Below, in pieces: positions 2,666-59,772 of a stretch of 64,000 nucleotides of DNA; position 1 is the stretch's first letter; each line of letters starts with the position of its first letter. The notes beneath the pieces were generated by a model. That model saw only the letters and a program-made list of their open reading frames with translations, was not told the DNA's origin and did no database searches. The stretch lies in assembly GCA_002269645.1 (NCBI GenBank), contig NIVC01000010.1:1054001-1118000 (forward strand), in the 5' to 3' direction. The DNA is from Macrostomum lignano (taxonomy: Eukaryota). A program made the translations under genes and the position numbers.

Positions 2666-2739
2666 AATGCCTTGCTCCCCCCTCACCCAACCGCATGACC
2701 GGTTATGAAAAATCTATAATTTTGCTTCAGGGCGACAAA

Positions 2740-5700
2740 ATAAGTGCCTGCAGCGCTAAAATGAGTGCCTGCAGCGCTAAAATGAGTGCCTGCAGCGCTA
2801 AAATGAGTGCCTGCGGCGCCAAAATGAGTGCCTGCGGCGCTAAAATGAGTGCCTGCGGCGCTAAAATGAGTGCCTGCGGCGCTAAAATGAGTGCCTGCGG
2901 CGCTAAAATGAGTGCCTGCGGCGCCAAAATGAGTGCCTGCGGCGCTAAAATGAGTGCGGCGCTAAAATGAGTGCCTGCGGCGCCAAAATGAGTGCCTGCG
3001 GCGCTAAAATGAGTGCCTGCGGCGCTAAAATGAGTGCCTGCGGCGCTAAAATGAGTGCCTGTGGCGCTAAATGAGTGCGGCGCTAATATGAGTGCCTGCA
3101 GTGCTAAAATGAGTGCCTGCAGCGCTAAAATGAGTGCCTGCGGCGCCAAAATGAGTGCCTGCGGCGCTAAAATGAGTGCGGCGCTAAAATGAGTGCCTGC
3201 GGCGCCAAAATGAGTGCCTGTAGCGCTAAAATGAGTGCCTGCGGCGCTAAAATGAGTGCCTGCGGCGCCAAAATGAGTGCCTGTAGCGCTAAAATGAGTG
3301 CCTGCGGCGCTAAAATGAGTGCCTGCGGCGCTAAAATGAGTGCCTGCGGCGCTAAAATGAGTGCCTGCGGCGCCAAAATGAGTGCGGCGCTAAAATGAGT
3401 GCCTGCGGCGCCAAAATGAGTGCCTGTAGCGCTAAAATGAGTGCCTGCGGCGCTAAAATGAGTGCCTGCGGCGCTAAAATGAGTGCCTGCGGCGCTAAAA
3501 TGAGTGCCTGCGGCGCTAAAATAAGTGCGGCGCCAAAATGAGTGCCTGTAGCGCTAAAATGAGTGCCTGCGGCGCTAAAAATGAGTGCCTGCGGCGCTAA
3601 AAATGAGTGCCTGCGGCGCTAAAATGAGTGCCTGCGGCGCTAAATGAGTGCGGCGCTAATATGAGTGCCTGCAGTGCTAAAATGAGTGCCTGCAGCGCTA
3701 AAATGAGTGCCTGCGGCGCCAAAATGAGTGCCTGCGGCGCCAAAATGAGTGCCTGCGGCGCTAAAATGAGTGCCTGCGGCGCAAAAATAAGTGCCTGCGG
3801 CGCTAAAATGAGTGCGGCGCTAAAATGAGTGCCTGCGGCGCCAAAATGAGTGCCTGTAGCGCTAAAATGAGTGCCTGCGGCGCTAAAATGAGTGCCTGCG
3901 GCGCTAAAATGAGTGCCTGCGGCGCTAAAATGAGTGCCTGCGGCGCTAAAATGAGTGCCTGCGGCGCTAAAATGAGTGCCTGCGGCGCTAAATGAGTGCG
4001 GCGCTAATATGAGTGCCTGCAGTGCTAAAATGAGTGCCTGCAGCGCTAAAATGAGTGCCTGCGGCGCCAAAATGAGTGCCTGCGGCGCTAAAATGAGTGC
4101 CTGCGGCGCTAAAATGAGTGCCTGCGGCGCTAAAATGAGTGCCTGCGGCGCTAAAATGAGTGCCTGCGGCGCTAAAATGAGTGCCTGCGGCGCTAAAATG
4201 AGTGCCTGCGACGCTAAAATGAGTGCCTGCGGCGCTAAAATGAGTGCGGCGCTAAAATGAGTGCCTGCGGCGCTAAAATGAGTGCGGCGCTAAAATGAGT
4301 GCCTGCGGCGCCAAAATGAGTGCCTGTAGCGCTAAAATGAGTGCCTGCGGCGCTAAAATGAGTGCCTGCGGCGCTAAAATGAGTGCCTGCGGCGCTAAAA
4401 TGAGTGCCTGCGGCGCTAAAATAAGTGCCTGCGGCGCTAAAATGAGTGCGGCGCTAAAATGAGTGCCTGCGGCGCCAAAATGAGTGCCTGTAGCGCTAAA
4501 ATGAGTGCCTGCGGCGCCAAAATAAATGCCTGTAGCGCTAAAATGAGTGCCTGCGGCGCTAAAATGAGTGCCTGCGGTGCTAAAATGAGTGCCTGCGGCG
4601 CTAAAATGAGTGCCTGCGGCGCTAAAATGAGTGCCTGCGGCGCTAAAATGAGTGCCTGCGGCGCTAAAATGAGTGCCTGCGGCGCTAAAATGAGTGCCTG
4701 CGGCGCTAAAATGAGTGCCTGCGGCGCTAAAATGAGTGCCTGCGGCTCTAAAAGGAGTGCGGCGCCAAAATGAGTGCCTGCGGCGCTAAAATGAGTGCCT
4801 GCGGCGCCAAAATGAGTGCCTGCGGCGCTAAAATGAGTGCCTGCGGCGCTAAAATGAGTGCCTGCGGCGCTAAAATGAGTGCCTGCGGCGCTAAAATGAG
4901 TGCCTGCGGCGCTAAAATGAGTGCCTGCGGCGCTAAAATGAGTGCCTGCGGCTCTAAAATGAGTGCCTGCGGCGCTAAAATGAGTGCGGCGCTAAAATGA
5001 GTGCCTGCGGCGCCAAAATGAGTGCCTGTAGCGCTAAAATGAGTGCCTGCGGCGCTAAAATGAGTGCCTGCGGCGCTAAAATGAGTGCCTGCGGCGCTAA
5101 AATGAGTGCCTGCGGCGCTAAAATGAGTGCCTGCGACGCTAAAATGAGTGCCTGCGGCGCTAAAATGAGTGCGGCGCTAAAATGAGTGCCTGCGGCGCTA
5201 AAATGAGTGCGGCGCTAAAATGAGTGCCTGCGGCGCCAAAATGAGTGCCTGTAGCGCTAAAATGAGTGCCTGCGGCGCTAAAATGAGTGCCTGCGGCGCT
5301 AAAATGAGTGCCTGCGGCGCTAAAATGAGTGCCTGCGGCGCTAAAATGAGTGCCTGCGGCGCTAAAATGAGTGCCTGCGGCTCTAAAAAGAGTGCGGCGC
5401 CAAAATGAGTGCCTGCGGCGCTAAAATGAGTGCCTGCGGCGCCAAAATGAGTGCCTGCGGCGCTAAAATGAGTGCCTGCGGCGCTAAAATGAGTGCCTGC
5501 GGCGCTAAAATGAGTGCCTGCGGCGCTAAAATGAGTGCCTGCGGCGCTAAAATGAGTGCCTGCGGCGCTAAAATGAGTGCCTGCGGCTCTAAAAGGAGTG
5601 CGGCGCCAAAATGAGTGCCTGCGGCTCTAAAAGAGTGCGGCGCCAAAATGAGTGCCTGCGGCGCCAAAATGAGTGCCTGTAGCGCTAAAATGAGTGCCTG

Positions 5701-8700
5701 CGGCGCTAAAATGAGTGCCTGCGGCGCTAAAATGAGTGCCTGCGGCGCTAAAATGAGTGCGGCGCTAAAATGAGTGCCTGCGGCGCTAAAATGAGTGCCT
5801 GCGGCGCAAAAATGAGTGCCTGCGGCGCTAAAATGAGTGCGGCGCTAAAATGAGTGCCTGCGGCGCCAAAATGAGTGCCTGTAGCGCTAAAATGAGTGCC
5901 TGCGGCGCTAAAATGAGTGCCTGCGGCGCTAAAATGAGTGCCTGCGGCGCTAAAATGAGTGCCTGCGGCGCCAAAATGAGTGCGGCGCTAAAATGAGTGC
6001 CTGCGGCGCCAAAATGAGTGCCTGTAGCGCTAAAATGAGTGCCTGCGGCGCTAAAATGAGTGCCTGCGGCGCTAAAATGAGTGCCTGCGGCGCTAAAATG
6101 AGTGCCTGCGGCGCTAAAATGAGTGCGGCGCCAAAATGAGTGCCTGTAGCGCTAAAATGAGTGCCTGCGGCGCTAAAATGAGTGCCTGCGGCGCTAAAAT
6201 GAGTGCCTGCGGCGCTAAAATGAGTGCCTGCGGCGCTAAATGAGTGCGGCGCTAATAGTGCCTGCGTGCTAAAATGAGTGCCTGCGCGCTAAAATGAGTG
6301 CCTGCGGCGCCAAAATGAGTGCCTGCGGCGCTAAAATGAGTGCCTGCGGCGCTAAAATGAGTGCCTGCGGCGCTAAAATGAGTGCCTGCGGCGCTAAAAT
6401 GAGTGCCTGCGGCGCTAAATGAGTGCGGCGCTAAATGAGTGCCTGCGTGCTAAAATGAGTGCCTGCGCGCTAAAATGAGTGCCTGCGGCGCCAAAATGAG
6501 TGCCTGCGGCGCTAAAATGAGTGCCTGCGGCGCTAAAATGAGTGCCTGCGGCGCTAAAATGAGTGCCTGCGGCGCTAAAATGAGTGCCTGCGGCGCTAAA
6601 ATGAGTGCCTGCGGCGCTAAAATGAGTGCCTGCGGCGCTAAAATGAGTGCGGCGCTAAAATGAGTGCCTGCGGCGCCAAAATGATTGCCTGCGGCGCTAA
6701 AAATGAGTGCCTGCGGCGCTAAAATGAGTGCCTGCGGCGCTAAAATGAGTGCCTGCGCGCTAAAATGAGTGCCTGCGGCTCTAAAAAGAGTGCGGCGCCA
6801 AAATGAGTGCCTGCGGCTCTAAAAGGAGTGCCTGCGGCGCTAAAATGAGTGCCTGCGGCGCCGAAATGAGTGCCTGCAGCGCTAAAATGAGTGCCTGCGG
6901 CGCTAAAATGAGTGCCTGCGGCGCTAAAATGAGTGCCTGCGGCGCTAAAATGAGTGCCTGCGGCGCTAAAATGAGTGCCTGCGGCGCTAAAATGAGTGCC
7001 TGCGGCGCTAAAATGAGTGCCTGCGGCGCTAAAATGAGTGCCTGCGGCGCTAAAATGAGTGCCTGCGGCGCTAAAATGAGTGCCTGCGGCGCTAAAATGA
7101 GTGCCTGCGGCTCTAAAAGGAGTGCGGCGCCAAAATGAGTGCCTGCGGCTCTAAAAGAGTGCGGCGCCAAAATGAGTGCCTGCGGCGCCAAAATGAGTGC
7201 CTGTAGCGCTAAAATGAGTGCCTGCGGCGCTAAAATGAGTGCCTGCGGCGCTAAAATGAGTGCCTGCGGCGCTAAAATGAGTGCGGCGTTAAAATGAGTG
7301 CCTGCGGCGCTAAAATGAGTGCCTGCGGCGCAAAAATGAGTGCCTGCGGCGCTAAAATGAGTGCGGCGCTAAAATGAGTGCCTGCGGCGCTAAAATGAGT
7401 GCCTGGCGCTAAAATGAGTGCCTGCGGCGCTAAAATGAGTGCCTGCGGCGCTAAAATGAGTGCCTGCGGCGCCAAAATGAGTGCCTGTAGCGCTAAAATG
7501 AGTGCCTGCGGCGCTAAAATGAGTGCCTGCGGCGCTAAAATGAGTGCCTGCGGCGCTAAAATGAGTGCCTGCGGCGCTAAAATGAGTGCCTGCGGCGCTA
7601 AAATGAGTGCGGCGCTAAAATGAGTGCCTGCGGCGCCAAAATGAGTGCCTGCGCTAAAATGAGTGCCTGCGGCGCTAAAATGAGTGCCTGCGGCGCTAAA
7701 ATGAGTGCCTGCGGCGCTAAAATGAGTGCCTGCGGCGCTAAAATGAGTGCGGCGCTAAAATGAGTGCCTGCGGCGCTAAAATGAGTGCGGCGCTAAATGA
7801 GTGCCTGCGGCTAAAATGAGTGCCTGCGCGCTAAAATGAGTGCCTGCGGCGCCAAAATGAGTGCCTGCGGCGCAAAATGAGTGCCTGCGGCGCTAAAATG
7901 AGTGCCTGCGGCGCAAAATGAGTGCCTGCGGCGCTAAAATGAGTGCGGCGCTAAAATGAGTGCCTGCGGCGCTAAAATGAGTGCCTGCGCGCTAAAATGA
8001 GTGCCTGCGGCGCTAAAATGAGTGCCTGCGGCGCTAAAATGAGTGCCTGCGGCGCTAAAATGAGTGCCTGCGGCGCTAAAATGAGTGCCTGCGGCGCTAA
8101 AATGAGTGCCTGCGGCGCTAAAATGAGTGCGGCGCTAAATGAGTGCCTGCGGCTAAAATGAGTGCCTGCGCGCTAAAATGAGTGCCTGCGGCGCTAAAAT
8201 GAGTGCCTGCGGCGCTAAAATGAGTGCCTGCGGCGCTAAAATGAGTGCCTGCGGCGCTAAAATGAGTGCCTGCGGCGCTAAAATGAGTGCCTGCGGCGCT
8301 AAAATGAGTGCCTGCGGCGCTAAAATGAGTGCCTGCGGCGCTAAAATGAGTGCGGCGCTAAAATGAGTGCCTGCGGCGCTAAAATGAGTGCCTGCGGCGC
8401 TAAAATGAGTGCCTGCGGCGCTAAAATGAGTGCCTGCGGCGCTAAAATGAGTGCCTGCGGCGCTAAAATGAGTGCCTGCGGCTCTAAAAAGAGTGCGGCG
8501 CCAAAATGAGTGCCTGCGGCGCTAAAATGAGTGCCTGCGGCGCTAAAATGAGTGCCTGCGGCGCTAAAATGAGTGCCTGCGGCGCTAAAATGAGTGCCTG
8601 CGGCGCTAAATGAGTGCGGCGCTAAAATGAGTGCCTGCGGCTAAAATGAGTGCCTGCGCGCTAAAATGAGTGCCTGCGGCGCTAAAATGAGTGCCTGCGG

Positions 8701-11700
8701 CGCTAAAATGAGTGCCTGCGGCGCTAAAATGAGTGCCTGCGGCGCTAAAATGAGTGCCTGCGGCGCTAAAATGAGTGCCTGCGGCGCTAAAATGAGTGCC
8801 TGCGGCGCTAAAATGAGTGCCTGCGGCGCTAAAATGAGTGCGGCGCTAAAATGAGTGCCTGCGGCGCTAAAATGAGTGCCTGCGGCGCTAAAATGAGTGC
8901 CTGCGGCGCTAAAATGAGTGCCTGCGGCGCTAAAATGAGTGCCTGCGGCGCTAAAATGAGTGCCTGCGGCGCTAAAATGAGTGCGGCGCCAAAATGAGTG
9001 CCTGCGGCGCTAAAATGAGTGCCTGCGGCGCTAAAATGAGTGCCTGCGGCGCTAAAATGAGTGTGCGGCGCCAAAATGAGTGCCTGCGGCGCTAAAATGA
9101 GTGCCTGCGGCGCTAAAATGAGTGCCTGCGGCGCTAAAATGAGTGCGGCGCTAAAATGAGTGCCTGCGGCTAAAATGAGTGCCTGCGCGCTAAAATGAGT
9201 GCCTGCGGCGCTAAAATGAGTGCCTGCGGCGCTAAAATGAGTGCCTGCGGCGCTAAAATGAGTGCCTGCGGCGCTAAAATGAGTGCCTGCGGCGCTAAAA
9301 TGAGTGCCTGCGGCGCTAAAATGAGTGCCTGCGGCGCTAAAATGAGTGCCTGCGGCGCTAAAATGAGTGCGGCGCTAAAATGAGTGCCTGCGGCGCTAAA
9401 ATGAGTGCGGCGCTAAAATGAGTGCCTGCGGCGCTAAAATGAGTGCGGCGCTAAAATGAGTGCCTGCGGCGCTAAAATGAGTGCCTGGCGCTAAAATGAG
9501 TGCCTGCGGCGCTAAAATGAGTGCCTGCGGCGCTAAAATGAGTGCCTGCGGCGCTAAAATGAGTGCCTGCGGCGCTAAAATGAGTGCCTGCGGCGCTAAA
9601 ATGAGTGCCTGCGGCGCTAAAATGAGTGCCTGCGGCGCTAAAATGAGTGCCTGCGGCTCTAAAAGGAGTGCGGCGCCAAAATGAGTGCCTGCGGCGCTAA
9701 AATGAGTGCGGCGCTAAAATGAGTGCCTGCGGCGCTAAAATGAGTGCCTGCGGCGCTAAAATGAGTGCCTGCGGCGCTAAAATGAGTGCCTGCGGCGCTA
9801 AAATGAGTGCCTGCGGCGCTAAAATGAGTGCCTGCGGCGCTAAAATGAGTGCCTGCGGCGCTAAAATGAGTGCCTGCGGCGCTAAAATGAGTGCCTGCGG
9901 CGCTAAAATGAGTGCCTGCGGCGCTAAAATGAGTGCCTGCGGCGCTAAAATGAGTGCCTGCGGCGCTAAAATGAGTGCCTGCGGCGCTAAAATGAGTGCC
10001 TGCGGCGCTAAAATGAGTGCCTGCGGCGCTAAAATGAGTGCCTGCGGCGCTAAAATGAGTGCCTGCGGCGCTAAAATGAGTGCCTGCGGCGCTAAAATGA
10101 GTGCCTGCGGCGCTAAAATGAGTGCCTGCGGCGTAAAATGAGTGCCTGCGGCGCTAAAATGAGTGCCTGCGGCGCTAAAATGAGTGCCTGCGGCGCTAAA
10201 ATGAGTGCCTGGCGCTAAAATGAGTGCCTGCGGCGCTAAAATGAGTGCCTGCGGCGCTAAAATGAGTGCCTGCGGCGCTAAAATGAGTGCCTGCGGCGCT
10301 AAAATGAGTGCCTGCGGCGCTAAAATGAGTGCCTGCGGCGCTAAAATGAGTGCCTGCGGCGCTAAAATGAGTGCCTGCGGCGCTAAAATGAGTGCCTGCG
10401 GCGCTAAAATGAGTGCCTGCGGCGCTAAAATGAGTGCCTGCGGCGCTAAAATGAGTGCCTGCGGCGCTAAAATGAGTGCCTGCGGCGCTAAAATGAGTGC
10501 CTGCGGCGCTAAAATGAGTGCCTGCGGCGCTAAAATGAGTGCCTGCGGCGCTAAAATGAGTGCCTGCGGCGCTAAAATGAGTGCCTGCGCTAAAATGAGT
10601 GCCTGCGGCTCTAAAATGAGTGCGGCGCCAAAATGAGTGCCTGCGGCGCTAAAATGAGTGCCTGGCGCTAAAATGAGTGCCTGCGGCGCTAAAATGAGTG
10701 CCTGCGGCGCTAAAATGAGTGCCTGCGGCGCTAAAATGAGTGCCTGCGGCGCTAAAATGAGTGCCTGCGGCGCTAAAATGAGTGCCTGCGGCGCTAAAAT
10801 GAGTGCCTGCGGCGCTAAAATGAGTGCGGCGCTAAAATGAGTGCCTGCGGCGCTAAAATGAGTGCGGCGCTAAAATGAGTGCCTGCGGCTCTAAAAGGAG
10901 TGCGGCGCCAAAATGAGTGCCTGCGGCGCTAAAATGAGTGCCTGCGGCGCTAAAATGAGTGCCTGCGGCGCTAAAATGAGTGCCTGCGGCGCTAAAATGA
11001 GTGCCTGCGGCGCTAAAATGAGTGCCTGCGGCGCTAAAATGAGTGCCTGCGGCGCTAAAATGAGTGCCTGCGGCGCTAAAATGAGTGCCTGCGGCGCTAA
11101 AATGAGTGCCTGCGGCTCTAAAATGAGTGCGCGGCGCCAAAATGAGTGCCTGCGGCGCTAAAATGAGTGCCTGCGGCGCTAAAATGAGTGCCTGCGGCGC
11201 TAAAATGAGTGCCTGCGGCGCTAAAATGAGTGCCTGCGGCGCTAAAATGAGTGCCTGCGGCGCTAAAATGAGTGCCTGCGGCGCTAAAATGAGTGCCTGC
11301 GGCGCTAAAATGAGTGCCTGCGGCGCTAAAATGAGTGCCTGCGGCGCTAAAATGAGTGCCTGCGGCGCTAAAATGAGTGCCTGCGGCGCTAAAATGAGTG
11401 CCTGCGGCGCTAAAATGAGTGCCTGCGGCGCTAAAATGAGTGCCTGCGCGCTAAAATGAGTGCCTGCGGCTAAAATGAGTGCCTGCGGCGCTAAAATGAG
11501 TGCCTGCGGCGCTAAAATGAGTGCCTGCGGCGCTAAAATGAGTGCCTGCGCTAAAATGAGTGCCTGCGGCGCTAAAATGAGTGCCTGCGGCGCTAAAATG
11601 AGTGCCTGCGGCGCTAAAATGAGTGCCTGCGGCGCTAAAATGAGTGCCTGCGGCGCTAAAATGAGTGCCTGCGGCGCTAAAATGAGTGCCTGCGGCGCTA

Positions 11701-12285
11701 AAATGAGTGCCTGCGGCGCTAAAATGAGTGCCTGCGGCGCTAAAATGAGTGCCTGCGGCGCTAAAATGAGTGCCTGCGGCGCTAAAATGAGTGCCTGCGG
11801 CGCTAAAATGAGTGCCTGCGGCGCTAAAATGAGTGCCTGCGGCGCTAAAATGAGTGCCTGCGGCGCTAAAATGAGTGCCTGCGGCGCTAAAATGAGTGCC
11901 TGCGGCGCTAAAATGAGTGCCTGCGGCGCTAAAATGAGTGCCTGCGGCGCTAAAATGAGTGCCTGCGGCGCTAAAATGAGTGCCTGCGGCGCTAAAATGA
12001 GTGCCTGCGGCTCTAAAAGAGTGCCTGCGCGCTAAAATGAGTGCCTGCGGCGCTAAAATGAGTGCCTGCGGCGCTAAAATGAGTGCCTGCGGCGCCAAAA
12101 TGAGTGCCTGCAGCGCTAAAATGAGTGCCTGCGGCGCCAAAATGAGTGCCTGCGGCGCTAAAATGAGTGCCTGCAGCGCTAAAATGAGTGCCTGCGGCGC
12201 TAAAATGAGTGCCTGCGGCGCTAAAATGAGTGCCTGCAGCGCTAAAAAAAATGCGGCGCTAAAATGAGTGCCTGCGGCGCCAAGT
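2740..12285 (+). repeat. ~9.5-kb satellite of a 21-bp unit GCTAAAATGAGTGCCTGCGGC with 17-bp deletion variants
   Basis: Continuous array; source of all MSACGAK/APQALIL/AAGTHFS ORFs. Confidence 0.98.
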
Positions 12286-13917: not shown

Positions 13918-13977
13918 TTAATTAGTCGGCAACAACTTCTTATTGAATGTTTAGTTTCATATTCATATTTAGGTACT

Positions 13978-14385
13978 TATTTTAGCGCCGCAGGCACTCA
14001 TTTAGGCACCGCAGGCACTATTTTAGCGCTGCGGGCACTCATTTTAGCGTCGCAGACACTCATTTTAGCGCCGCAGGCACTCATTTTGGCGCCGCAGACA
14101 CTCATTTTAGCACCACAGGCACTCATTTTAGCGCCGCAAGCACTCATTTTAGCGCCGCAGGCACTCATGTTAGCGCCACAATAACTCATTTTAGCGCCGC
14201 AGGCACTCATTTTAGCGCCACAGGCACTCATTTTAGCGTCGCGAGCACTCATTTTAGCGCCGCAGACACTCATTTTAGCGCCGCAGGCACTCATTTTAGC
14301 GCCGCAGGCACTCATTTTAGCGCTACAGGCACTCATTTTAGCGCCGCAGGCACTCATTTTAGCGCCACGGGCACTCATTTCGTCA
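13978..14385 (-). repeat. Inverted, more diverged copy of the 21-bp satellite (~19 units)
   Basis: TTTTAGCGCCGCAGGCACTCA is the reverse complement of the 2740-12285 unit. Confidence 0.95.
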
Positions 14386-15210: not shown

Positions 15211-25381
<10,171 letters not shown>

Positions 25382-27450: not shown

Positions 27451-27887
27451 TTATTGATCGATCTATTTTTCTGTATTTCGAATGTCCAGAGCGCCCTACT
27501 TTTTCAGAAGACTGAATAGTAGTATCTTTGGCATTAAAAATAAATAACTCTACGAATTTTACTCAAAACAGGAGGAAAGAAAGCGAAATCGAAACTGCTA
27601 CTTGTTCTTTGAGATCATCATCATTCTCCGTAGACTCTACTTGGAAATGCATCACATACTTGAATACATTGCCATCGTTACATTTGTGTCGCAATTGCTT
27701 TGCTCCAATTGCCCTTTAATTAATGCCAGAGTGTACTATTATCATTAATTCAACTATTTACAAACAGCTATGATAGCAGGGACAAGGAACTTTGGCAGCT
27801 GTGTATCGCAAATCATTCTTAAGGCTTATTGTCTTCTCAAAGGCATTTTGGTGGCACATACGGCCTGGGCTCGCACCCCACCCTGCT

Positions 27888-29178
27888 GTAGCTGTGTTCC
27901 CACCCCGTTGTAGCTGTCTCCCCCCGCTGTAGCTGTCTCCCCCCGCTGTAGCTGTCTCCCCCCGCTGTAGCTGTCTCTCCCCCGCTGTAGCTGTCTCCCC
28001 CGCTGTAGCTGTCTCCCCCCGCTGTAGCTGTCTCCCCCCGCTGTAGCTGTCTCCCCCCGCTGTAGCTGTCTCCCCCCGCTGTAGCTGTCTCCCCCCGCTG
28101 TAGCTGTCTCCCCCCGCTGTAGCCGTCTCCCCCCGCTGTAGCTGTCTCCCCCCGCTGTAGCTGTCTCCCCCCCGCTGTAGCTGTCTCCCCCCGCTGAAGC
28201 TGTCTCCCTCCGCTGTAGCTGTCTCCCCCCGCTGTAGCTGTCTCCCCCGCTGTAGCTGTCTCCCCCCGCTGTAGCTGTCTCCCCCCCGCTGTAGCTGTCT
28301 CCCCCCCGCTGTAGCTGTCTCCCCCCCGCTGTAGCTGTCTCCCCCCGCTGTAGCTGTCTCCCCCCGCTGTAGCTGTCTCCCCCCGCTGTAGCCGTCTCCC
28401 CCCGCTGTAGCTGTCTCCCCCCGCTGTAGCTGTCTCCCCCCCGCTGTAGCTGTCTCCCCCCCGCTGTAGCTGTCTCCCCCCCGCTGAAGCTGTCTCCCCC
28501 GCTGTAGCTGTCTCCCCCCGCTGTAGCTGTCCCCCCCCGCTGTAGCTGTCTCCCCCCCGCTGTAGCTGTCTCCCCCCCGCTGTAGCTGTCTCCCCCCCGC
28601 TGTAGCTGTCTCCCCCCCGCTGTAGCTGTCTCCCCCCCGCTGAAGCTGTCTCCCCCGCTGTAGCTGTCTCCCCCCGCTGTAGCTGTCTCCCCCGCTGTAG
28701 CTGTCTCCCCCCGCTGTAGCTGTCTCCCCCCGCTGTAGCTGTCTCCCCCCGCTGTAGCTGTCTCCCCCCCGCTGTAGCTGTCTCCCCCCGCTGTAGCTGT
28801 CTCCCCCCGCTGTAGCTGTCTCCCCCCCGCTGAAGCTGTCTCCCCCGCTGTAGCTGTCTCCCCCCCGCTGAAGCTGTCTCCCCCGCTGTAGCTGTCTCCC
28901 CCCGCTGTAGCTGTCTCCCCCCGCTGTAGCTGTCTCCCCCCGCTGTAGCTGTCTCCCCCCGCTGTAGCTGTCTCCCCCCCGCTGTAGCTGTCTCCCCCCC
29001 GCTGTAGCTGTCTCCCCCCGCTGAAGCTGTCTCCCCCCGCTGTAGCTGTCTCCCCCCCGCTGTAGCTGTCTCCCCCCGCTGTAGCTGTCCCCCCCGCTGT
29101 AGCTGTCTCCCCCCGCTGTAGCTGTCTCCCCCCGCTGTAGCTGTCCCCCCCGCTGTAGCTGTCTCCCCCCGCTGTAGC
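27888..29178. repeat. 18-20-bp minisatellite GCTGTAGCTGTCT(C)5-7
   Basis: Tandem array with variable C-run length. Confidence 0.96.
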
Positions 29179-30046
29179 CGACCCTCTGTTGCTGCAGGAC
29201 TGTAGAACGACTCATTTTAGATAAATGGCAACTCAAATAAATCGGTTGGCCGCCCACGCTCAGGTACTCACAAAACTGACAAGGAGAATGAACTTCCATT
29301 TTTTCGTGAGCAAGCGAGCTTTGTAAATCTGTCAGAACAGAGTCTGAATGTTTTACACAGGCTCTCTTGTGACGTCTTTTTAAAGCTGGCTACTCACGAA
29401 ATCCTGAATATTTGCGAGCCTCATCCAGGCAGGCAGACAGGCGAGCAGTTGTCATCGGCAACTCAAGTAGAAGGTCGCGATTCTCTCACAAAATCGTGCG
29501 ACTCTTACTTTGCCGAAAAAGCACTAGCTATATAGTAAGAACTCCCAATCTCGCTACTGAATTTTATAGGTAAACCTTGCCTCATTTATCCGGATTAAGA
29601 ATTAATTGTGCTCATCATAGTGTAAATTTGTTACCAAACAAAATACATTTGTATTTAGTTAGGTAAATAAGCATGTCAAGCAGAGAAGTACAATATGCCA
29701 TTTAAATGATTGCTATCTTTCACATTAACCCACTGCTCATCGATATATTTACTTTGTTTATTTAAATGTCACACAAATCCAATTAAATAGTTTCCAGAGT
29801 CGCAGACTTTTAGGATCTTTTAAAAAATAAAGCCAAAAGAAACAGTCGGTCGCTGCTCGACTTAGGATGTCACGTAGCCCTCAGTTAAACATGCTCCAAA
29901 TTTTCTGTTTTTAAACTCGAGGGGGGATTTGTTATTTTTGGTTAACAAGCATTAAAGACAAACAAATTGCGATTGATATTATCGTAGGATTTCTCGCTGA
30001 CTTGATTCATAAACGGTGCTGACTCGAGTTGCGCATGGCAACTAAC

Positions 30047-30426
30047 CTACTGCGGCCGCTCATGCATGGCTCGCAGTTTCCAATAGAAGTTTGGACAGCC
30101 GCACTGGCAGGGCAGCTGCTGGTTGCCATAGTTATACCAGCTCGACTTGCACTTGAAAGCCGCCAGACAGAAGTGCCGGCAGATCATGCGCCAGTGGGCG
30201 ATCACCTTGGCTGTAATCAGGGGGGGGGCAATTCAGAGATGGAACACCTGCGTCAATTTAGAAGACATATGTAGCTAAGCCAGGACTCACCATGCGCCGA
30301 CGGTATAAACGACACGCGTTTGCTAGCGATTGAAAGGTTGTCGGTGTTAGTTGAATCTGCAGCGCCGTCCACTGCCACAGCGACAGCGCAGGCAAGAATG
30401 AAGCAGATGCCAACCAGGACTTGCAT
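30047..30426 (-). CDS. Two-exon 99-aa prepropeptide with a 6-Cys cationic mature region (defensin/mytilin-like candidate)
   Basis: join(30426-30291, 30210-30047) on the minus strand. 80-nt intron with GTGAGT donor and C-rich TGATTACAG acceptor, phase 1 matches. MQVLVGICFILACAVAVAVDG-AADSTNTDNLSIASKR-VSFIPSAHAKVIAHWRMICRHFCLAAFKCKSSWYNYGNQQLPCQCGCPNFYWKLRAMHERPQ*. Confidence 0.7.
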
Positions 30427-30526
30427 TTCTGTCTCTATTGATCTATCGAGTAGCAAACTAAGGCCTTCGACTGATTCCAAATTTCCAAGTTTGCGCAGCA
30501 AAAGCTGACGCCTCACGGGCGCTCAA

Positions 30527-30532: not shown

Positions 30533-31869
30533 CTATTGATTTTCATCGATGCAGCCAATGAGAGCGTTAATGGGATAGCTGAAGGACGACTAATCGCAAG
30601 TGGGAGGAGCAAAGGAGAGACTGGCGGGGGTGGACTTTAATGAGGATATGGACAACTACAGTAGAAGGACGTTTTACTCGCAAATCGTCCAAGTCAAAGT
30701 TGGAGGTCGGGTTTCACATTGGAAAACGGATGACAGACTTAGGAAGTGGGTTTAGTTTCTTTGCACCAAATTTCCTAAGCCTCACCTTTTGCAAGTACGC
30801 GAGTTCTTCAGGTTTTAGGTAGATAAAATAGTTGCAGTTGTTACAGGGTCATAATTTCATCTCTATAAAGGTTTTTGATGATGCTGATTTCAATTTTTTT
30901 GCTTCATTTCTGTGTAGCATGAGATTCTTCATTTGAATTGAGTTCACGAACCTAAACTTCAATGGAGGAATGGAGGCCTATAGAATAGGTATATTTATTC
31001 TTGACTCTTGGGAACCAACTGAACCCAGAGGTGAAGCAGAGAGCTCTGAAGATAACAGTTGTTATATTTAGAAGTCTCTGGGTGAACCCAACAACCATCC
31101 ACCAGGGGCATAAGGAATGGGGGTTTTAGGGTGGGGAGAAAAAACAACTATATTTGAGCGTTTTGGCTCTTTAACAAGAAGTTTTTCACAACTTTTCTCG
31201 ACTATCTTGTGAGAACACCTCGAACTAAACCGCGCAAGAAGATGATTTATTGGGAGTTGAGTGCAAAAGGAACTGAAAAACACCCACTTTGCTAATGCGT
31301 TTTACAGCAAAAAAATCGAGCCTCCAGCAAATCTTTTGAGCGGGATTCTTTTAAGTTAAAACCCAGCATTTTCAAGTCACACAGATTCTTGTCAGTTTTT
31401 GCGTCTTTCATCTTCGGTAGTTAAAGAATATTTAATCAAATAAATCCGCATCTGGTGTGTCGGATGAGCAGGTAGGCAAAAGATCCATCAATAAGGAAAT
31501 TGATTTTTAAAAATACTAATTTTTGAAATGGAGATTAACATGCCTGCAGGCTGTTCTTATGAGTTATTTTTCGGTTCAGCCTTTCAATCTTTCCTACCAC
31601 CCAGAACAATTGACGTCATTGCCTTGTGAGCCCGATCGTCAAATAGAGCGCAGTTTTTTCAAAAGCAAAAAGCTAACTTGTTGCAACCATCTAGCTAGCT
31701 TCACGCTCCCCCACAGAGAAGCTAAGCAATACTATTTGCGATTCAGAACAGCGGTTGAAGGAACTGAGAGCTTGGAAGAGTGCCGTCCGTCACCTCTTCG
31801 CATCAGGGGTGTGGCCTTCATCAGCGTGTATTTGAGGTAGGCACCAGAGAGCATTTCGCATTATTAACG

Positions 31870-32855
31870 ACCAGGGGCTTTAGCACCAGGGGCGCCAGCA
31901 CCAGGGGCTTTAGCACCAGGGGCGCCAGCACCAGGGGCTTTAGCACCAGGGGCTTTAGCACCAGGGGCTTTAGCACCAGGGGCGCCAGCACCAGGGGCGC
32001 CAGCACCAGGGGCGCCAGCACCAGGGGCGCCAGCACCAGGGGCGCCAGCACCAGGGGCGCCAGCACCAGGGGCGCCAGCACCAGGGGCGCCAGCACCAGG
32101 GGCGCCAGCACCAGGGGCGCCAGCACCAGGGGCGCCAGCACCAGGGGCGCCAGCACCAGGGGCGCCAGCACCAGGGGCGCCAGCACCAGGGGCGCCAGCA
32201 CCAGGGGCGCCAGCACCAGGGGCTTTAGCACCAGGGGCGCCAGCACCAGGGGCTTTAGCACCAGGGGCGCCAGCACCAGGGGCGCCAGCACCAGGGGCGC
32301 CAGCACCAGGGGCTTTAGCACCAGGGGCGCCAGCACCAGGGGCGCCAGCACCAGGGGCGCCAGCACCAGGGGCGCCAGCACCAGGGGCGCCAGCACCAGG
32401 GGCGCCAGCACCAGGGGCGCCAGCACCAGGGACGCCAGCACCAGGGGCTTTAGCACCAGGGGCGCCAGCACCAGGGGCGCCAGCACCAGGGGCGCCAGCA
32501 CCAGGGGCTTTAGCACCAGGGGCTTTAGCACCAGGGGCGCCAGCAACAGGGGCGCCAGCACCAGGGGCGCCAGCACCAGGGGCTTTAGCACCAGGGGCGC
32601 CAGCAACAGGGGCGCCAGCACCAGGGGCTTTAGCACCAGGGGCGCCAGCACCAGGGGCTTTAGCACCAGGGGCTTTAGCACCAGGGGCGCCAGCACCAGG
32701 GGCGCCAGCACCAGGGACGCCAGCACCAGGGGCTTTAGCACCAGGGGCGCCAGCACCAGGGGCGCCAGCACCAGGGGCGCCAGCACCAGGGGCGCCAGCA
32801 ACAGGGGCGCCAGCACCAGGGGCTTTAGCACCAGGGGCGCCAACACCAGGAGCAC
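31870..32855. repeat. 15-bp minisatellite AGCACCAGGGG(CGCC/CTTT), ~65 copies
   Basis: Tandem array with two dominant unit types. Confidence 0.96.
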
Positions 32856-33634
32856 CAGTTGTTGCCTTTTATATATTTTTGATAAAAAAAATCCAGATAT
32901 TGAATAATGTCAATAGTACATACTAGCAATGAGATGTCAATGAATTAGCCATACATCACGCTCTGGTATGTGTAGTGAGTGATAAACATGCCAAGGTTGG
33001 ATCGTTCGATAATAAATCATATAATATTTAAGTAGAAGGACAATGTACTTCTACAAACTGCTTAAATTTCGCTTCAAAGTTCAAATAGAGCAGGTACATT
33101 TTTGTACGAAGTTGCTAATTAGAGCAATAATTATAACTTTATTCTTTAGTGCTAAGCCGATCTTAAGATGTGAAGAACTTCGTCTCCGGTTATTTTCTAT
33201 TTGTCTAGAGAGCGGAAGGAATCACTGAGACATTTTATCAAGATTTTTGTATTGTCTATTGCTTAATTATTCTTTGAAATCTGTGACTAGTTTCAGTTTG
33301 GTCGTTTAATTACCTCCTAATGGACAAAAAAACTGTTGCAGCACAACGTTATGGAGGATTTCGCTGGACTTTAAAGGCATCTTCACTTTTGTAACGATTT
33401 TGAAGTTCTGTAAAAACTTTTAAAAGCGCCTGACTAATAGTCTAATGCGAAGAGGAACTGCTTTATCCTAAGGCCGTATCCCGCCATGCAGTATCTGGTT
33501 AAAAATAGAACGATTCCAATGCACACCTGATCAGACGGACATGCGCAACAGTCGAAATTTCCTAATATAGAAAGCCCAGCATTGGTAGAAAATTTCTTTA
33601 CCCCCCTCCATGTGGGTAGGACAGCCATCATTTA

Positions 33635-48628: not shown

Positions 48629-51468
48629 ATGCGCCAGCTCAGCCTGTTAGCCAGAGTTGGAATTCGCTGCCTCCACCAGTCGGCTGTGAGCCGATTGGCC
48701 GCCCCGCCGGCAGCTAAAAAAGTTTTCAAGCGGGACAAGCCGCACATGAACATCGGCACTATTGGCCACGTTGATCACGGCAAGACCACTCTGACCGCCG
48801 CTATTACTAAGATCCTCTCGTCTGATAAGACGGCCACGTTTAAAGCTTACGATCAGATTGACTCGGCGCCAGAGGAGAAGAAACGCGGCATCACTATCAA
48901 TGCAGCTGTGGTGGACTATAGCACCAAAAATAGGCACTATGCTCACGTTGATTGTCCGGGCCACGCTGATTATATTAAGAATATGATTACTGGTTTGTTA
49001 TTCTTTTATATACTGTGCCTATTTTTGCTATTTCACAATCCTCACAATCACCTCATCTACAAATCCTCAGGTTGGGATTAGAGTGAAGTCACCCAGATCC
49101 CCAGTTGCTGGGAACCCAGGCTCACAGATCCCCAGTTGCCGGGCACCCAGCCTCACAGATCCCCAGTTGCTGGGCACCCAGCCTCACAGATCCCCAGTTG
49201 CTGGGCACCCAGCCTCACAGATCCCCAGTTACTGGGCACCCAGCCTCACAGATCCCCAGTTGCTGGGCACCCAGCCTCACAGATCCCCAGTTACCGGGCA
49301 CCCAGCCTCACAGATCCCCAGTTTCTCTGTCGCCATCCTCTCAGGCGCGCAATACTCGAATGCGAACCCTCACTGCTAACTGAACTGCAGGCTCGAACCA
49401 GATGGAAGCGGCCGTGCTAGTTGTGGCGGCCACCGATGGCACAATGCCTCAGACCAAGGAGCACTTGCTCTTAGCCAAACAGATCGGCATCCAGAATCTT
49501 GTTGTCTTCATCAACAAAGCCGACGCCGCTGACAGCGAGATGCTCGAACTAGTCGAACTGGAGATCCGAGACGTGCTGAAGTCCTACGGCTTCGATGGCG
49601 ACAACATCCCCGTGATTGCCGGGTCCGCCCTCTGCGCCCTGGAAGGCCGGGAGTCGGCTATTGGCGAGTCAAAGATCCGCGAACTGCTTGATAAGATCGA
49701 CTCCGTGCCGCTGCCTCCGAGGGATTTAGACAAGCCGTTTTACCTGCCTATCGAACAGGTGAGCTGTTTGTTGACCATCGGACACTTCATTGATGGCAAC
49801 CCACTAAAGAAGGTTGCAGCCTTGCAGGTAGATGGCAACCCACTAAAGAAGGTTGCAGCCTTGCAGGTAGATGGCAACCCACTAAAAAAGGTTGCAGCCT
49901 TTCAGGTAGATGGCAACCCACTAAAGAAGGTTGCAGCCTTGCAGGTAGATGGCAACCCACTAAAGAAGGTTGCAGCCTTGCAGGTAGATGGCAACCCACT
50001 AAAGAAGGTTGCAGCCTTGCATGTAGATGGCAACCCACTAAAGAAGGTTACAGGTAGATGGCAATCCACTTCAAAGTTTGCAGGTAGATGGCAACCCACT
50101 TCAAAGGTTGCAGGTAAATGGCAATCCACTTCAAAGGTTGCAGGTAGATAACAACCCACTTCAAAGGTTGCAGGTAGATGGCAATCCACTTCAAAGGTTG
50201 CAGGTAAATAGCTACTCATTTTAGGAGGCTGCAGGTAGATGGTAACCCACTTTTAGGAGGTTGCAGATAGATGGTAACCCACTTCAAAGGTTGCAGGTAG
50301 ATAGCTAGCTACCCGCTTTAGGAGGGTTGCAGGTAGATGGCAACCCGCTGAAGGAGCAACCCACTTAGGAGGTTGCACGTAGATGGCGACCCACTTTAAA
50401 AGGTTGCAGTTAGGTAACAACCTACTTAAAGAGGCTGTGGGTACATGTAGATAGCAAACCTACTTAAAGAAGCTTTCATTATTCATTTTCAAAAAAGTTG
50501 ACTCTTGTGCACCTTTTGTCTCACTGTTTATTCAACCTATAGGTGCACCAAATCACTGGCCGAGGTTGCGTAGCCACTGGCCGAGTTGAACGGGGCATCT
50601 GCAAGCCGCAGGATGCGGTAGAAATTATTGGCTACAATCGGTTCGTTAAGTCCACCGTGACTGGCGTTGAAATGTTCAGGCAGCTGTTGGACAAGGCGGA
50701 ACCTGGTGATCAGGTTTGTGCCTTTTTATTGTTCCAACTGAGATACCCGGGTAGTGCGTGGATAAAAAAGCTGCTGCAGGCTAAAGGAGAGGAGAGAGGA
50801 GTGGGAATAGAGAGGAGCGGAAAGGAGAGAAGAGGAAAGAAAAGAAGAGAAGAGAAGCGGAGATCACAGAGAAAAGAAGAGAAGAGAGAAGAGGAGATTA
50901 GAGAAAAGAACTGAGAAGAGACACGCAAGCCTTGAGCGGGCCGGATTGCTATTGTGAAGTTTCAAAGGACCCGAGGGCTGGATAAAGAGGCTTTTCGGGC
51001 TCTTTGCCGACCCCTGAGCTGATATCTCAATGCTAAGATACCTGCTATTAACAATAATGAATTCGACCCAATGCTTCAAAGGTCGGAGTCCTACTACGCG
51101 GAGTTAAACGCGACGATATCCGGCGCGGCATGGTGATCTCGGCGCCTAAATCGGTCACCCAGCACAATCGCGCCAAAGTGAAGCTGTACATGCTAAGCAA
51201 AGACGAAGGCGGCCGCGACAAGCCGCTGATGCCCGGCTCGCAGATCCATGTGTACAGTAAGACATTCGACTGTCCCTGTCTTATTGGCATGGAGGGCAAT
51301 CGGGAGATGCTGATGCCTGGCGAAGATGCGCCAGCCGTGCTCGACATGCACAAGCGCATGGTGATTGAGCCGGGCCAGCGGTTCACTATACGGAGCGGCG
51401 GTAGCACTTCTGGCTATGGCGTTGTTGTGGAAGCCCTGCCGGACTCGGACGGATCCAAGTGGAAGTGA
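48629..51468 (+). CDS. TUFM: Mitochondrial elongation factor Tu, 4 exons, 429 aa
   Basis: join(48629-48992, 49391-49758, 50543-50713, 51082-51468), 1290 nt. Arg-rich presequence, [52 protein letters not shown]. Confidence 0.95.
49085..49325. repeat. 31-bp minisatellite CACAGATCCCCAGTTGCTGGGCACCCAGCCT in TUFM intron 1
   Basis: ~7 tandem copies. Confidence 0.93.
49790..50410. repeat. 39-bp then ~30-bp related minisatellite (GCAGGTAGATGGCAACCCACT..AAGGTT) in TUFM intron 2
   Basis: Tandem copies decaying toward the 3' end. Confidence 0.92.
50750..51016 (+). mobile_element. hAT-type (MER58-like) MITE fragment with a purine-rich interior, TUFM intron 3
   Basis: Ends TTTGCCGACCCCTG; core GATTGCTATTGTGAAGTT(T)CAAAGGACCC shared with 56875 and 57679. 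Confidence 0.65.
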
Positions 51469-57402: not shown

Positions 57403-59772
57403 ATGGCATCGGGAGACACTGGGTCCTCCGATGTGGAACTCGTTTATTTTAAACGATGCACCGACAAGCTCATGTCAGCATCTACCTCAGCTGCAAAGGT
57501 AAGTCCTGTCTTTTTACTGGGTAGTATTAAACTGGGTTTCAAATGCATAGCATAACATTGCACTCCTAGCTAGTGTCTTGCCGAACTGCTTTTTTGTGGT
57601 GCAAAACAGGTATTAATTTAGAATTTGCAAAGGCCATAACTCTAGCGTCTAGCGTAAATTAATAAGCTTAGTCCAGTCCAGTGTCTCCTCCAACCCCCTG
57701 GCCCGCGGGCCACATTCGGCCGCAAAGCCTCGCCTCTATCCGGCCCTCGGGTCCTTCGAAACTTCACAAAAGCAATCCGGGGCGCTCAAGGTTTGTGTCC
57801 TCTCTATTCTCCTATTCTCCTCTTTCCTTTCTCTCCTCTCCCTTCTCTCGTCTCATTCTCTTCTCTCTTCTCTCCTCTTCTTTTCTCTATCCCCCTCTCT
57901 TCTCTCCTATACCCCCTTTCCTTCTTTTTTCTTTCTTCTTTTTTTGCTAGGCTCTCCATCTGGCCCTTGAGATAAAATTTTGCCAACGCTTGAGCTTGGA
58001 CAATCTAAAATATTTTAAAAAATATTGACTCAAATAATCCGACCAAACCTTTCCAAATTGCCAAAATGAAACTTAAAACATTAAATCAGCATCGAAATCA
58101 ATCCCTTCAGAAGCTGGATTTGCTCAGGCGCCTACGCCAGGTCAAGGTGAACATGCAGGTGCTAGCCAGCAGTGGCATTGGCAAAGCTGTCAACGCTTGT
58201 CGCGACGGCTCGCGCAGCGAACTTGACACGGTTGCCACCGAGCTTGTTAACAATTGGAAACGAATTGTTGACTCGGCCTTGACTCAACGACCGGAATTGC
58301 TCAGCCAGCCCTTGCCAGCTGTAGCCGAGGTGACTTCCACAGCTAAACAAAAATCCAGTCCTAGCTTTAGTACCGAACCAATTTCTACAGATACGAATTC
58401 GAAGATTGGCAATTCTTCTAATTCTTTTATTGCTTCCAATTCGGATTCTAAGAAATCAAGTAGCGTTTCTAAGAAATCAAGCGACGATTCTAAGAAACCG
58501 AATGGCGATTCTAAGAAATCTGTCAACGAGTCCATAAAGCAAGAACTAAGCCACTCGGCTTCTTCTGCTAACCAATCAAGCAGTTGTCTTGAGTCAAAGA
58601 AGAAGCCCAGTGAGTTGGACAAGTCCGAACAATCTTCAGGTAAAATTGCTGCTAGGCCGGGCGTGTCTTTCAGTTTGCCACCGCCTGTTCCTCCCGCTAC
58701 TACGGAAGATTCGACTCGCTCGAGTTCATCTTGTAAGGCCAAGAAGAAGAAGAAAAAGAACAGACCAGAATCCAGTTTAGGCGAATTCGATAATACGACA
58801 GGATTAACATTCGGCGACTGCCTAGAGCTGGCCGCCTCGAAGCGACCAGACAAGAAAAAGAAGAAAAAGAAGCAGAAAGCTGAGGCATTGCCTCAACTGC
58901 CGTCAGAATTGGACTTGGGAATTAGCGAAGACCCAGCAATAGCTGCCAAATCGGCAGCTTCATTGAAGCAAAACTCAACAACAGAGGACAATAATGACGG
59001 ATTGGCTATTCCGTTGAAATTTCACACTCGAACAGCTGTTTACTCGGGCAGATCGCGTAGCGTGTACGACACTGTGCCGACTCTGAAACAGGTCTGTCTT
59101 GATTATCTTGCCGCTCACTTGGACTGGCTGGGTGCCATGGGGCCAGGCGTGCCCTATCACGTGATCAAGCCTGTCTTAGCCAAATGCAACGTGGAGCAAC
59201 TGGAACGCCTAGAAGGTCACAATCCTCATTTAATTGGAGACGATGACGAACTGTGGCAGTTGCACTTCATGCGCGATTTCCCCGATGTCCAATTAATCGA
59301 GGATGACGGCGCCAGCTCCAACTCGGCGCCGTGGCGCCGGCGCTATATAAAATCGAGGCGCAAACAGCAGGCAAAGCTGCAAAGCATAACGGAACGATTA
59401 GCTAATACCCAGGCTCAGGCGCGCAGTCAGCAGCGTAAAACTATGTTCACGCTAATTGACAAGCCGCCGCAGCGCAAGCGAAATCGGCATCGCGACGATT
59501 CGGAGGCGCCTTCGTTGAAATTTTCCAATTCAAGCAAAACCGCGCGTAGTTCAGCAAATCCTGAGCGTGCTCAGCTAGTTGAGCAGTTGTCTCAGCACAT
59601 ATTGCCAACCGCTTCGGCGCCAATGTCGGTGCACAGCGGCGAAGGCGGCGGCAAGTCCTCGGGTGCGTCAACCTCTGGCGGGGCTCGGGGTTCTACTAAA
59701 TCCGCTCCGCTGATGAGCAAGACGCTGAAACAAGTGAAACGACTCAAAGCTAGCGGTTATTATCGGGTGTGA
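57403..59772 (+). CDS. ELOA: Elongin A (transcription elongation factor B polypeptide 3), 2 coding exons, 585 aa
   Basis: join(57403-57498, 58111-59772), AAG|GTAAGT donor and TTCAG acceptor, phase 0. TFIIS-N domain (LASSGIGKAVN..LVNNWK), RTAVYSG, BC box VPTLKQVCLDYL, VPYHVIKPVL..C..EQLERLE..NP..DDDELW, WRRRY, C-terminal APLMSKTLK. Confidence 0.93.
57679..57992 (-). mobile_element. Third copy of the MER58-like MITE, inverted, in the ELOA intron
   Basis: GGCCCGCGGGCC signature; reverse complement of the shared core and CT-rich tract; ends TTTGCCAACGCTTG. Confidence 0.7.

Follow-up and report, generated by a model that had tools for sequence, protein, structure and literature searches.

Mlig016917, an apparently lineage-restricted gene for a predicted secreted cysteine-rich peptide of Macrostomum lignano, a flatworm

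A 64,000-nt stretch of genomic DNA (hereinafter referred to as the window) was found to contain a two-exon gene, Mlig016917.g1, whose product is best read as a lineage-restricted secreted disulfide-rich peptide. With a probability of about 0.7, we regard Mlig016917.g1 as a genuine, transcribed, and selectively constrained coding gene of Macrostomum lignano, which specifies a lineage-restricted small secretory protein and is one of three homeologous copies.

Gene structure and annotation

The window was assigned to contig NIVC01000010.1 of the M. lignano assembly Mlig_3_7 (GCA_002269645.1), as the fetched locus of PAA94439.1 matched it at 100%. The features of the gene are listed in Table 1. 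Splicing of the two exons on the minus strand gives a translated product of 99 amino acids, MQVLVGICFILACAVAVA / VDGAADSTNTDNLSIASKR / VSFIPSAHAKVIAHWRMICRHFCLAAFKCKSSWYNYGNQQLPCQCGCPNFYWKLRAMHERPQ. In a protein search, this product was identical to the UniRef entry A0A1I8IHM5, and it equals GenBank PAA94439.1 (hypothetical protein BOX15_Mlig016917g1, partial) except for the translated 5' UTR of the latter. The M. lignano proteins P0008, P0006, and P0001 matched the product at 100% and 99%. A first-pass annotation of the window had proposed a spliced 99-aa ORF in two exons. This ORF is present, equals the transcript-derived GenBank/UniProt model, and shows signs of purifying selection in the same frame. 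It had also been described as hidden, which it is not, being already annotated in GenBank as BOX15_Mlig016917g1.

Table 1. Features of Mlig016917.g1 in the window (positions count from the first letter of the window).
Feature	Position	Strand	Details
Inverted CCAAT box	30555-30559	minus	reads ATTGG in gene orientation, as part of CTCATTGGCTG; TATA box follows ~25 nt downstream
TATAAA box	30532-30527	minus	101-106 nt upstream of the ATG; kept in three copies
5' UTR	30427-30486	minus	at least 60 nt; in-frame translation GNLESVEGLSLLLDRSIETE in the GenBank "partial" model P0006
Exon 1	30426-30291	minus	136 nt; ATG at 30426
Predicted signal peptide, codons 1-18	30373-30426	minus	MQVLVGICFILACAVAVA; hydrophobic; A-V-A before the likely cleavage point
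Acidic spacer/pro-segment, codons 19-37	30316-30372	minus	VDGAADSTNTDNLSIAS; calculated pI 4.4; ends in KR
KR, residues 36-37	30321-30316	minus	candidate proprotein-convertase site
End of exon 1	30291-30315	minus	opening 8 codons of the putative mature peptide, then base 1 of codon 46
Intron	30290-30211	minus	80 nt; phase 1; GTGAGT...C9-tract...TTACAG
Exon 2	30210-30047	minus	164 nt; ends in TAG
Exon 2, coding part	30050-30210	minus	residues 46-99; all six cysteines; C-terminal tail PNFYWKLRAMHERPQ
Stop codon TAG	30047-30049	minus	read from the sequence
AATAAA	29757-29762	minus	284 nt past the stop codon; no other canonical poly(A) signal in the downstream 650 nt

As read from the sequence, the splice donor is CATG/GTGAGT, and a C-rich tract precedes the acceptor TTACAG/CC, which lies within CCCCCCCCCTGATTACAG/CC. 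The GenBank gene set of M. lignano was produced from a genome-guided RNA-seq transcriptome using StringTie/TACO together with de novo assembly (PMC5730564). Trans-splicing and poly(A) reads supplied the gene boundaries, and ORFs were called by TransDecoder and not ab initio (PMC5730564). Since the annotation was built on an RNA-seq transcriptome (PMC5730564), the 30291^30210 junction has transcript support, at second hand through the method of annotation. The use of an upstream acceptor, named in the first-pass annotation as a case that would speak against the gene, was without support; the upstream acceptors yield Cys-poor frames.

The TATA box that had been reported about 100 nt upstream of the start codon was found (Table 1). 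It is located approximately 40-45 nt upstream of the annotated mRNA-derived 5' end (30486, in the partial model P0006, 60 nt upstream of the ATG), and this position of the assembled 5' end fits a TATA promoter. The block containing the inverted CCAAT box, a candidate NF-Y-type site, was identical across the three homeologous copies. Promoter and splice signals were canonical and conserved among the three copies. Downstream of the gene, the AATAAA listed in Table 1 probably serves as the poly(A) signal.

Two shorter UniProt entries, A0A1I8FK52 (70 aa; P0002) and A0A1I8FKI6 (46 aa; P0003), agree with the 99-aa sequence over part of their length, after which their frame changes. They were rejected as splice isoforms and read as frameshifted predictions of the same sequence, presumably made on an older, error-prone assembly containing indels. 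Both entries could mislead analyses of homology or isoforms.

The precursor layout claimed in the first-pass annotation, namely signal peptide, acidic pro-segment, KR site, and cationic Cys-rich peptide, is present in full in the sequence, with the signal peptide and the KR cleavage predicted from composition. The n-region of the predicted signal peptide contains no basic residue, and its h-region is long (~17 residues). A shortened UniRef model that shares the first 41 residues with the 99-aa product bears the name "Secreted protein". The peptide following KR consists of 62 amino acids with four Lys, four Arg, one Glu, four His, and three Trp, in agreement with the counts given previously, and has a calculated pI of 9.5 and a net charge of about +7. 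Its cysteines are residues 56, 60, 66, 80, 82, and 84, which confirms the reported spacing C-X3-C-X5-C-X13-C-X-C-X-C.

The window is crowded with mini- and microsatellite arrays (2737-12280, 13971-14380, 27881-29178, 31870-32858, and ~15 others), and the peptide gene is bracketed by arrays of a 19-mer and a 15-mer. The 9.5-kb array consists of 467 copies of a 21-mer, and a short inverted array is present 1.7 kb away from it. Most of the long ORFs in the window (e.g., 27758-29299 and 22042-23264) fall within such arrays and represent artefacts of the repeats. In addition, two plus-strand ORFs (48629-49081 and 49402-50151) correspond to consecutive halves of an EF-Tu-type GTP-binding domain (PF00009). 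They are separated by a 31-mer tandem repeat (49094-49323), and the end of the second one is overlapped by 39-mer and 30-mer tandem repeats (49792-50346), which may be a coding repeat. Further, a single-exon ORF of 568 aa with Med26/TFIIS-helical and Elongin-A domains was identified on the plus strand (58066-59772), corresponding to an elongin-A-like gene.

Homeologous copies and coding constraint

Two further copies of the gene were found in the assembly, g3 on NIVC01002402.1 (locus L001) and g2 on NIVC01000199.1 (locus L002). A Na/Ca-exchanger gene (PF01699) is present ~3 kb downstream of each of these copies, and exchanger exons are found downstream of the peptide gene in the window too. 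The three copies are thus syntenic homeologs of a neopolyploid genome and not dispersed repeats. The exchanger exons of the window, which are of NCKX type, extend from ~25500 to 15200 on the minus strand (e.g., 23230-23421, 21494-21811, 16093-16323, and 15214-15426). Both the alpha-1 and the alpha-2 motif are present, and the introns are packed with satellites. No exchanger gene is listed in the part of the contig that the GenBank locus spans, from about 20047 to 40486.

For the analysis of constraint, g1, g2, and g3 were compared in a three-way alignment of 1.4 kb, in which the coding sequence of these recent homeologs contained only 11 substitutions. Variable columns made up 3.7% of the coding sequence (11/300) versus 10.8% of the intron and flanks (123/1141; Fisher p = 7e-5). 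The intron, located between the two exons, had 7 variable columns of 80 as well as indels in the C-run. In the 99-aa frame, the coding changes were 7 synonymous to 4 non-synonymous, versus 3:8 and 1:10 in the other frames; the probability of at least 7 synonymous changes out of 11 was 0.004, or 0.03 when only transitions were considered. The lower variability of the coding sequence relative to intron and flanks, together with the synonymous bias in one frame, points to a constrained coding gene. Within the limits of a small sample of substitutions, the signs of purifying selection in precisely the 99-aa frame are coherent.

The amino-acid differences among the copies were N30D, S32P, S43L, and P85S, two of which (N30D and S32P) fall in the acidic spacer. 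Three non-synonymous changes were thus located in residues 1-43 and one in residues 44-99. In the coding part of exon 2, four sites were variable among the three copies, comprising three synonymous changes and P85S, the latter being the only difference between the protein of the third copy and that of g1. The ORF, six cysteines, KR, splice sites, and stop codon were intact in all three copies.

Site patterns along the alignment were mosaic. In the flanks, g2 and g3 were the same and both unlike g1 (23 consecutive sites on the 5' side and 21 sites on the 3' side), and in exon 1 and the intron (30376-30200) g1 was equal to g3 and g2 differed; a second g2-specific block was found at 29742-29620. 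These patterns suggest gene conversion between homeologs. They bear on an alternative in which Mlig016917 is a transcribed but functionless young ORF, conserved through the recent origin of the copies and gene conversion. The absence of homologues outside the species, the total of only 11 substitutions, and the ability of gene conversion, indicated by the mosaic sites, to homogenise exons are compatible with such an origin. However, the intron has diverged 2-3 times as much as the exons on either side of it, so that gene conversion alone does not explain the conservation of the exons. The synonymous bias, moreover, is confined to one frame, and no copy has lost the ORF, a splice site, one of the six cysteines, or the KR site. 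We therefore consider a functionless ORF highly improbable.

Comparison with known cysteine-rich families

Homologues of the constrained, lineage-restricted product were sought among 5.8 billion word-indexed proteins and by exhaustive phmmer search over 1.84 billion representative proteins, and no relatives outside M. lignano were found in either collection. Two other matches below 1e-3 were spurious: a repeat protein of 6209 aa (P0004), aligned without any cysteine, and an unrelated fragment of 173 aa (P0005). The restriction to the species is provisional and may partly reflect the small number of other macrostomid sequences in public protein collections. By tblastn against the window, the protein matched only its own gene, and the paralogue cluster for which this search had been proposed was absent from the window. 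Nothing on Mlig016917 was found in the literature on flatworm antimicrobial peptides or neuropeptides, and a full-text literature search returned no mention of it. The same was true of those parts of the supplements to PMC5816591, PMC5946080, PMC12896417, PMC7336406, and PMC12732829 that were searched, an absence that is uninformative.

The first-pass annotation had compared the peptide with invertebrate CS-alpha-beta defensins and bivalve mytilins. Three queries (full precursor, mature peptide, and Cys core) were searched against Pfam-A by hmmscan at E up to 10, where the HMMER filters set an effective reach of ~E 0.1. Within this reach, none of the three queries matched a defensin (Defensin_2), gamma-thionin, macin, myticin, or scorpion-toxin-like/toxin family, so the proposed profile search for defensin, macin, and myticin relatives came out negative. 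Only sub-threshold noise was returned (ATG5_UblA, Somatostatin, and zf-RING_16). A phmmer search of PDB sequences, which include Kremen1, found nothing at E up to 10.

Mlig016917 shares with the CS-alpha-beta defensins (Defensin_2) a predicted signal peptide, an anionic spacer, a dibasic site, and a cationic mature peptide with six cysteines. Unlike them, it has no cysteine before CxxxC, and its third Cys of the C-terminal group belongs to a terminal CxCxC. The mature part thus departs from the canonical order C1...C2xxxC3...C4...C5xC6, and without a Cys N-terminal to CxxxC the canonical C1-C4, C2-C5, C3-C6 pattern is impossible. A regular-expression scan of the mature peptide for the gamma-core, reportedly defined by Yount and Yeaman, found neither GXC-X3-9-C nor its reversed forms (GXC/CXG; 0 of 3 forms). 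In addition, the Mlig016917 peptide is longer (62 aa versus ~35-45 aa in CS-alpha-beta defensins) and is extended by Cys-free stretches, 18 residues long N-terminally and 15 C-terminally.

Two AlphaFold2 single-sequence models gave the same helix / beta-hairpin / helix topology at low confidence (mean pLDDT 51 and 64). In both of them, the long helix bears CxxxC, the short beta-hairpin ends at C80, where the CxC is situated, and a C-terminal helix follows; the first two of these predicted features recall the CS-alpha-beta defensins, in whose fold two disulfides hold a helix against an antiparallel sheet. The hydrophobic moments of the predicted helices were no higher than those of shuffled sequences. 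Two Foldseek searches against the PDB retrieved no defensin and nothing below E = 2, the top matches being K+ channels, Wnt, and RecA at E >2.

Antimicrobial-peptide and toxin families usually diversify in the Cys core. The few substitutions among the three copies showed the opposite pattern, being mostly located in the signal, pro-, and N-terminal parts, albeit in small numbers. Mytilins and myticins have eight cysteines and a C-terminal anionic pro-region and form diversified multigene families. The Mlig016917 peptide resembles them in being cationic and Cys-rich, with an early C-X3-C and a late C-X-C-X-C as in the mytilin pattern, but it has six cysteines, an N-terminal spacer, a single locus per subgenome, and no match to the Myticin-prepro profile.

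These results bear on the possibility that the product is a cysteine-stabilised alpha/beta host-defence peptide, in which a helix-on-hairpin fold locked by the CxxxC/CxC disulfides would kill microbes via anionic membranes or cell-wall precursors. Its charge and pI, the six cysteines among abundant Trp, His, and Arg, the precursor layout, the placement of CxxxC and CxC in both models, and a TATA-type promoter, which is typical of inducible genes, are all in keeping with this function. Against it stand the lack of any match to a defensin, macin, myticin, or toxin profile up to ~E 0.1, the missing first Cys and gamma-core, the unremarkable hydrophobic moments, the negative Foldseek result, the presence of one copy per subgenome with no tandem cluster, and a Cys core that is the most conserved part, on small numbers. 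We consider a host-defence peptide of this type questionable. The affinity to defensins or mytilins claimed in the first-pass annotation is therefore not borne out: profile, Cys order, gamma-core, helix amphipathicity, gene clustering, and comparison of the low-confidence models with solved folds all failed to reveal it. Its remark that the peptide matches no recognised family was upheld, as the only relatives among the 1.84 billion representatives were M. lignano copies. Of its suggestion of a possibly undescribed peptide family, the absence of a known family stood, whereas kinship with antimicrobial peptides or toxins was without support.

Another lead came from the automatic UniRef name "WSC domain-containing protein", which is attached to the g1 and g2 proteins, with PROSITE PS51212 as its probable source. 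By eye, there is a likeness between CRHFC...YNYGNQQLPCQCG of Mlig016917 and CLRFC...YQLAGVEAGYACFCG in the centre of the KREMEN1 WSC domain, with a common core of C-x-[RH]-F-C ... Y-x-[YL]-[GA]-G ... C-x-C-G. On these grounds, the peptide could be a WSC-type (PAN-like) carbohydrate-binding module in degenerate or minimal form. As in WSC domains (PF01822; Kremen1 and yeast Wsc1), a CxxFC in a helix is followed by an aromatic-Gly stretch and C-x-C-G. However, Pfam WSC gave no match even at E up to 10, and profile-profile comparison with KREMEN1 WSC sequences (hhalign) gave a probability of 0.3%. A WSC domain has ~90 residues and 8 cysteines versus 62 residues and 6 cysteines in Mlig016917, which would cover only the middle third of the domain and is without its N-terminal YxGC strand and C-terminal CGG segment. 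The third copy, for all its near identity to g1, carries no WSC name. A WSC identity was rejected on the PF01822, hhalign, and PDB phmmer results together with size and Cys count, and a degenerate module is very unlikely.

The C-terminal stretch CPNFYWKL (residues 84-91; 30050-30074) gave a match to the somatostatin/cortistatin core (PF03002) of 13.8 bits and E 0.057, below the cutoff of 20.3. The NFYWK stretch is flanked by a single Cys and lacks a basic site in front of it; among the copies, the first position of CPNFYWKL to vary is either P or S. A peptide of somatostatin/allatostatin-C type was rejected on the score below gathering, the lack of a ring-closing Cys, and the lack of a preceding basic site; judged from the sequence, the match is most likely due to chance.

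The same stretch enters into a further alternative, in which Mlig016917 would be the precursor of a prohormone or water-borne pheromone, from which a convertase frees the conserved 62-aa disulfide-rich peptide as a ligand for a receptor in neuroendocrine or reproductive communication. A single KR that follows a variable spacer and precedes a highly conserved peptide (one versus three non-synonymous changes) is in line with this function, as are a size and Cys count like those of invertebrate protein hormones and pheromones and the sub-threshold match of CPNFYWKL, though the latter has the shortcomings given above. No C-terminal Gly for amidation is present, and no homologue was found in planarian or parasitic flatworm proteomes, while bilaterian hormone families are usually traceable across proteomes. 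A prohormone or pheromone precursor is therefore regarded as unlikely.

On sequence grounds, membership of Mlig016917 in the defensin, mytilin, myticin, macin, or WSC families was not detectable. It most closely resembles the lineage-restricted secreted Cys-rich orphans of flatworms, such as the gland and seminal-fluid transcripts of Macrostomum (PMC5977470, PMC7336406), with which it shares small size, a predicted signal peptide, no annotated domains, and no homologues outside the genus.

Predicted processing and possible roles

For the lineage-restricted secreted disulfide-rich peptide, the following course of events can be proposed. The hydrophobic N-terminus of 18 residues would direct the nascent chain co-translationally into the ER, with cleavage near A18/V19. 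The six cysteines would form three disulfides, which would probably staple the CxxxC helix (approximately residues 44-64) to residues 70-84, which hold the short hairpin as well as the CxCxC segment. Because the structure models are of low confidence, the disulfide-stapled fold is conjectural. A convertase of Kex2/furin type may then cut after KR37, releasing a peptide of ~7.4 kDa, and the exported peptide may bind a specific extracellular partner via its cationic, aromatic surface. Secretion, processing at KR, disulfide formation, and any activity are deduced here from the features of the precursor.

Outside the cell, such a peptide could serve in defence or as an antimicrobial, which is a tentative possibility; it has a charge and a Cys content suited to defence. 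Another gland secretion, whether reproductive, pharyngeal, or epidermal, is proposed just as tentatively, and in Macrostomum an uncharacterised gland secretion is what the base rate favours. A signalling role as a hormone or pheromone-like molecule is considered slightly less likely. With its conserved Cys core, variable spacer, and single locus per subgenome, the gene is a better fit for a signalling ligand or specific binding protein than for an antimicrobial peptide or toxin of the fast-diversifying kind. It is decidedly unlikely that Mlig016917 is the founder of a macrostomid-specific family of disulfide-stapled host-defence peptides, which would have arrived convergently at a helix and hairpin with the new Cys arrangement CxxxC...C...CxCxC. 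If the host-defence reading were true, no disulfide-rich antimicrobial peptide of a free-living flatworm would, to our knowledge, have been characterised before this one.

The main value of the present analysis lies in the finding that the gene is in all probability real, constrained, and already annotated, and that neither the defensin/mytilin label nor the automatic WSC label is supported. As matters stand, the M. lignano annotation contains many lineage-restricted hypothetical secreted proteins, of which Mlig016917 is one, and it amounts to a new and unnamed family only in the way that many lineage-restricted secreted Cys-rich proteins do. M. lignano is a model organism with transgenesis and RNAi. 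Should the peptide turn out to act as an effector in immunity or as a ligand in signalling, it would provide a new cysteine scaffold and a handle on the poorly known secreted peptides of free-living flatworms.
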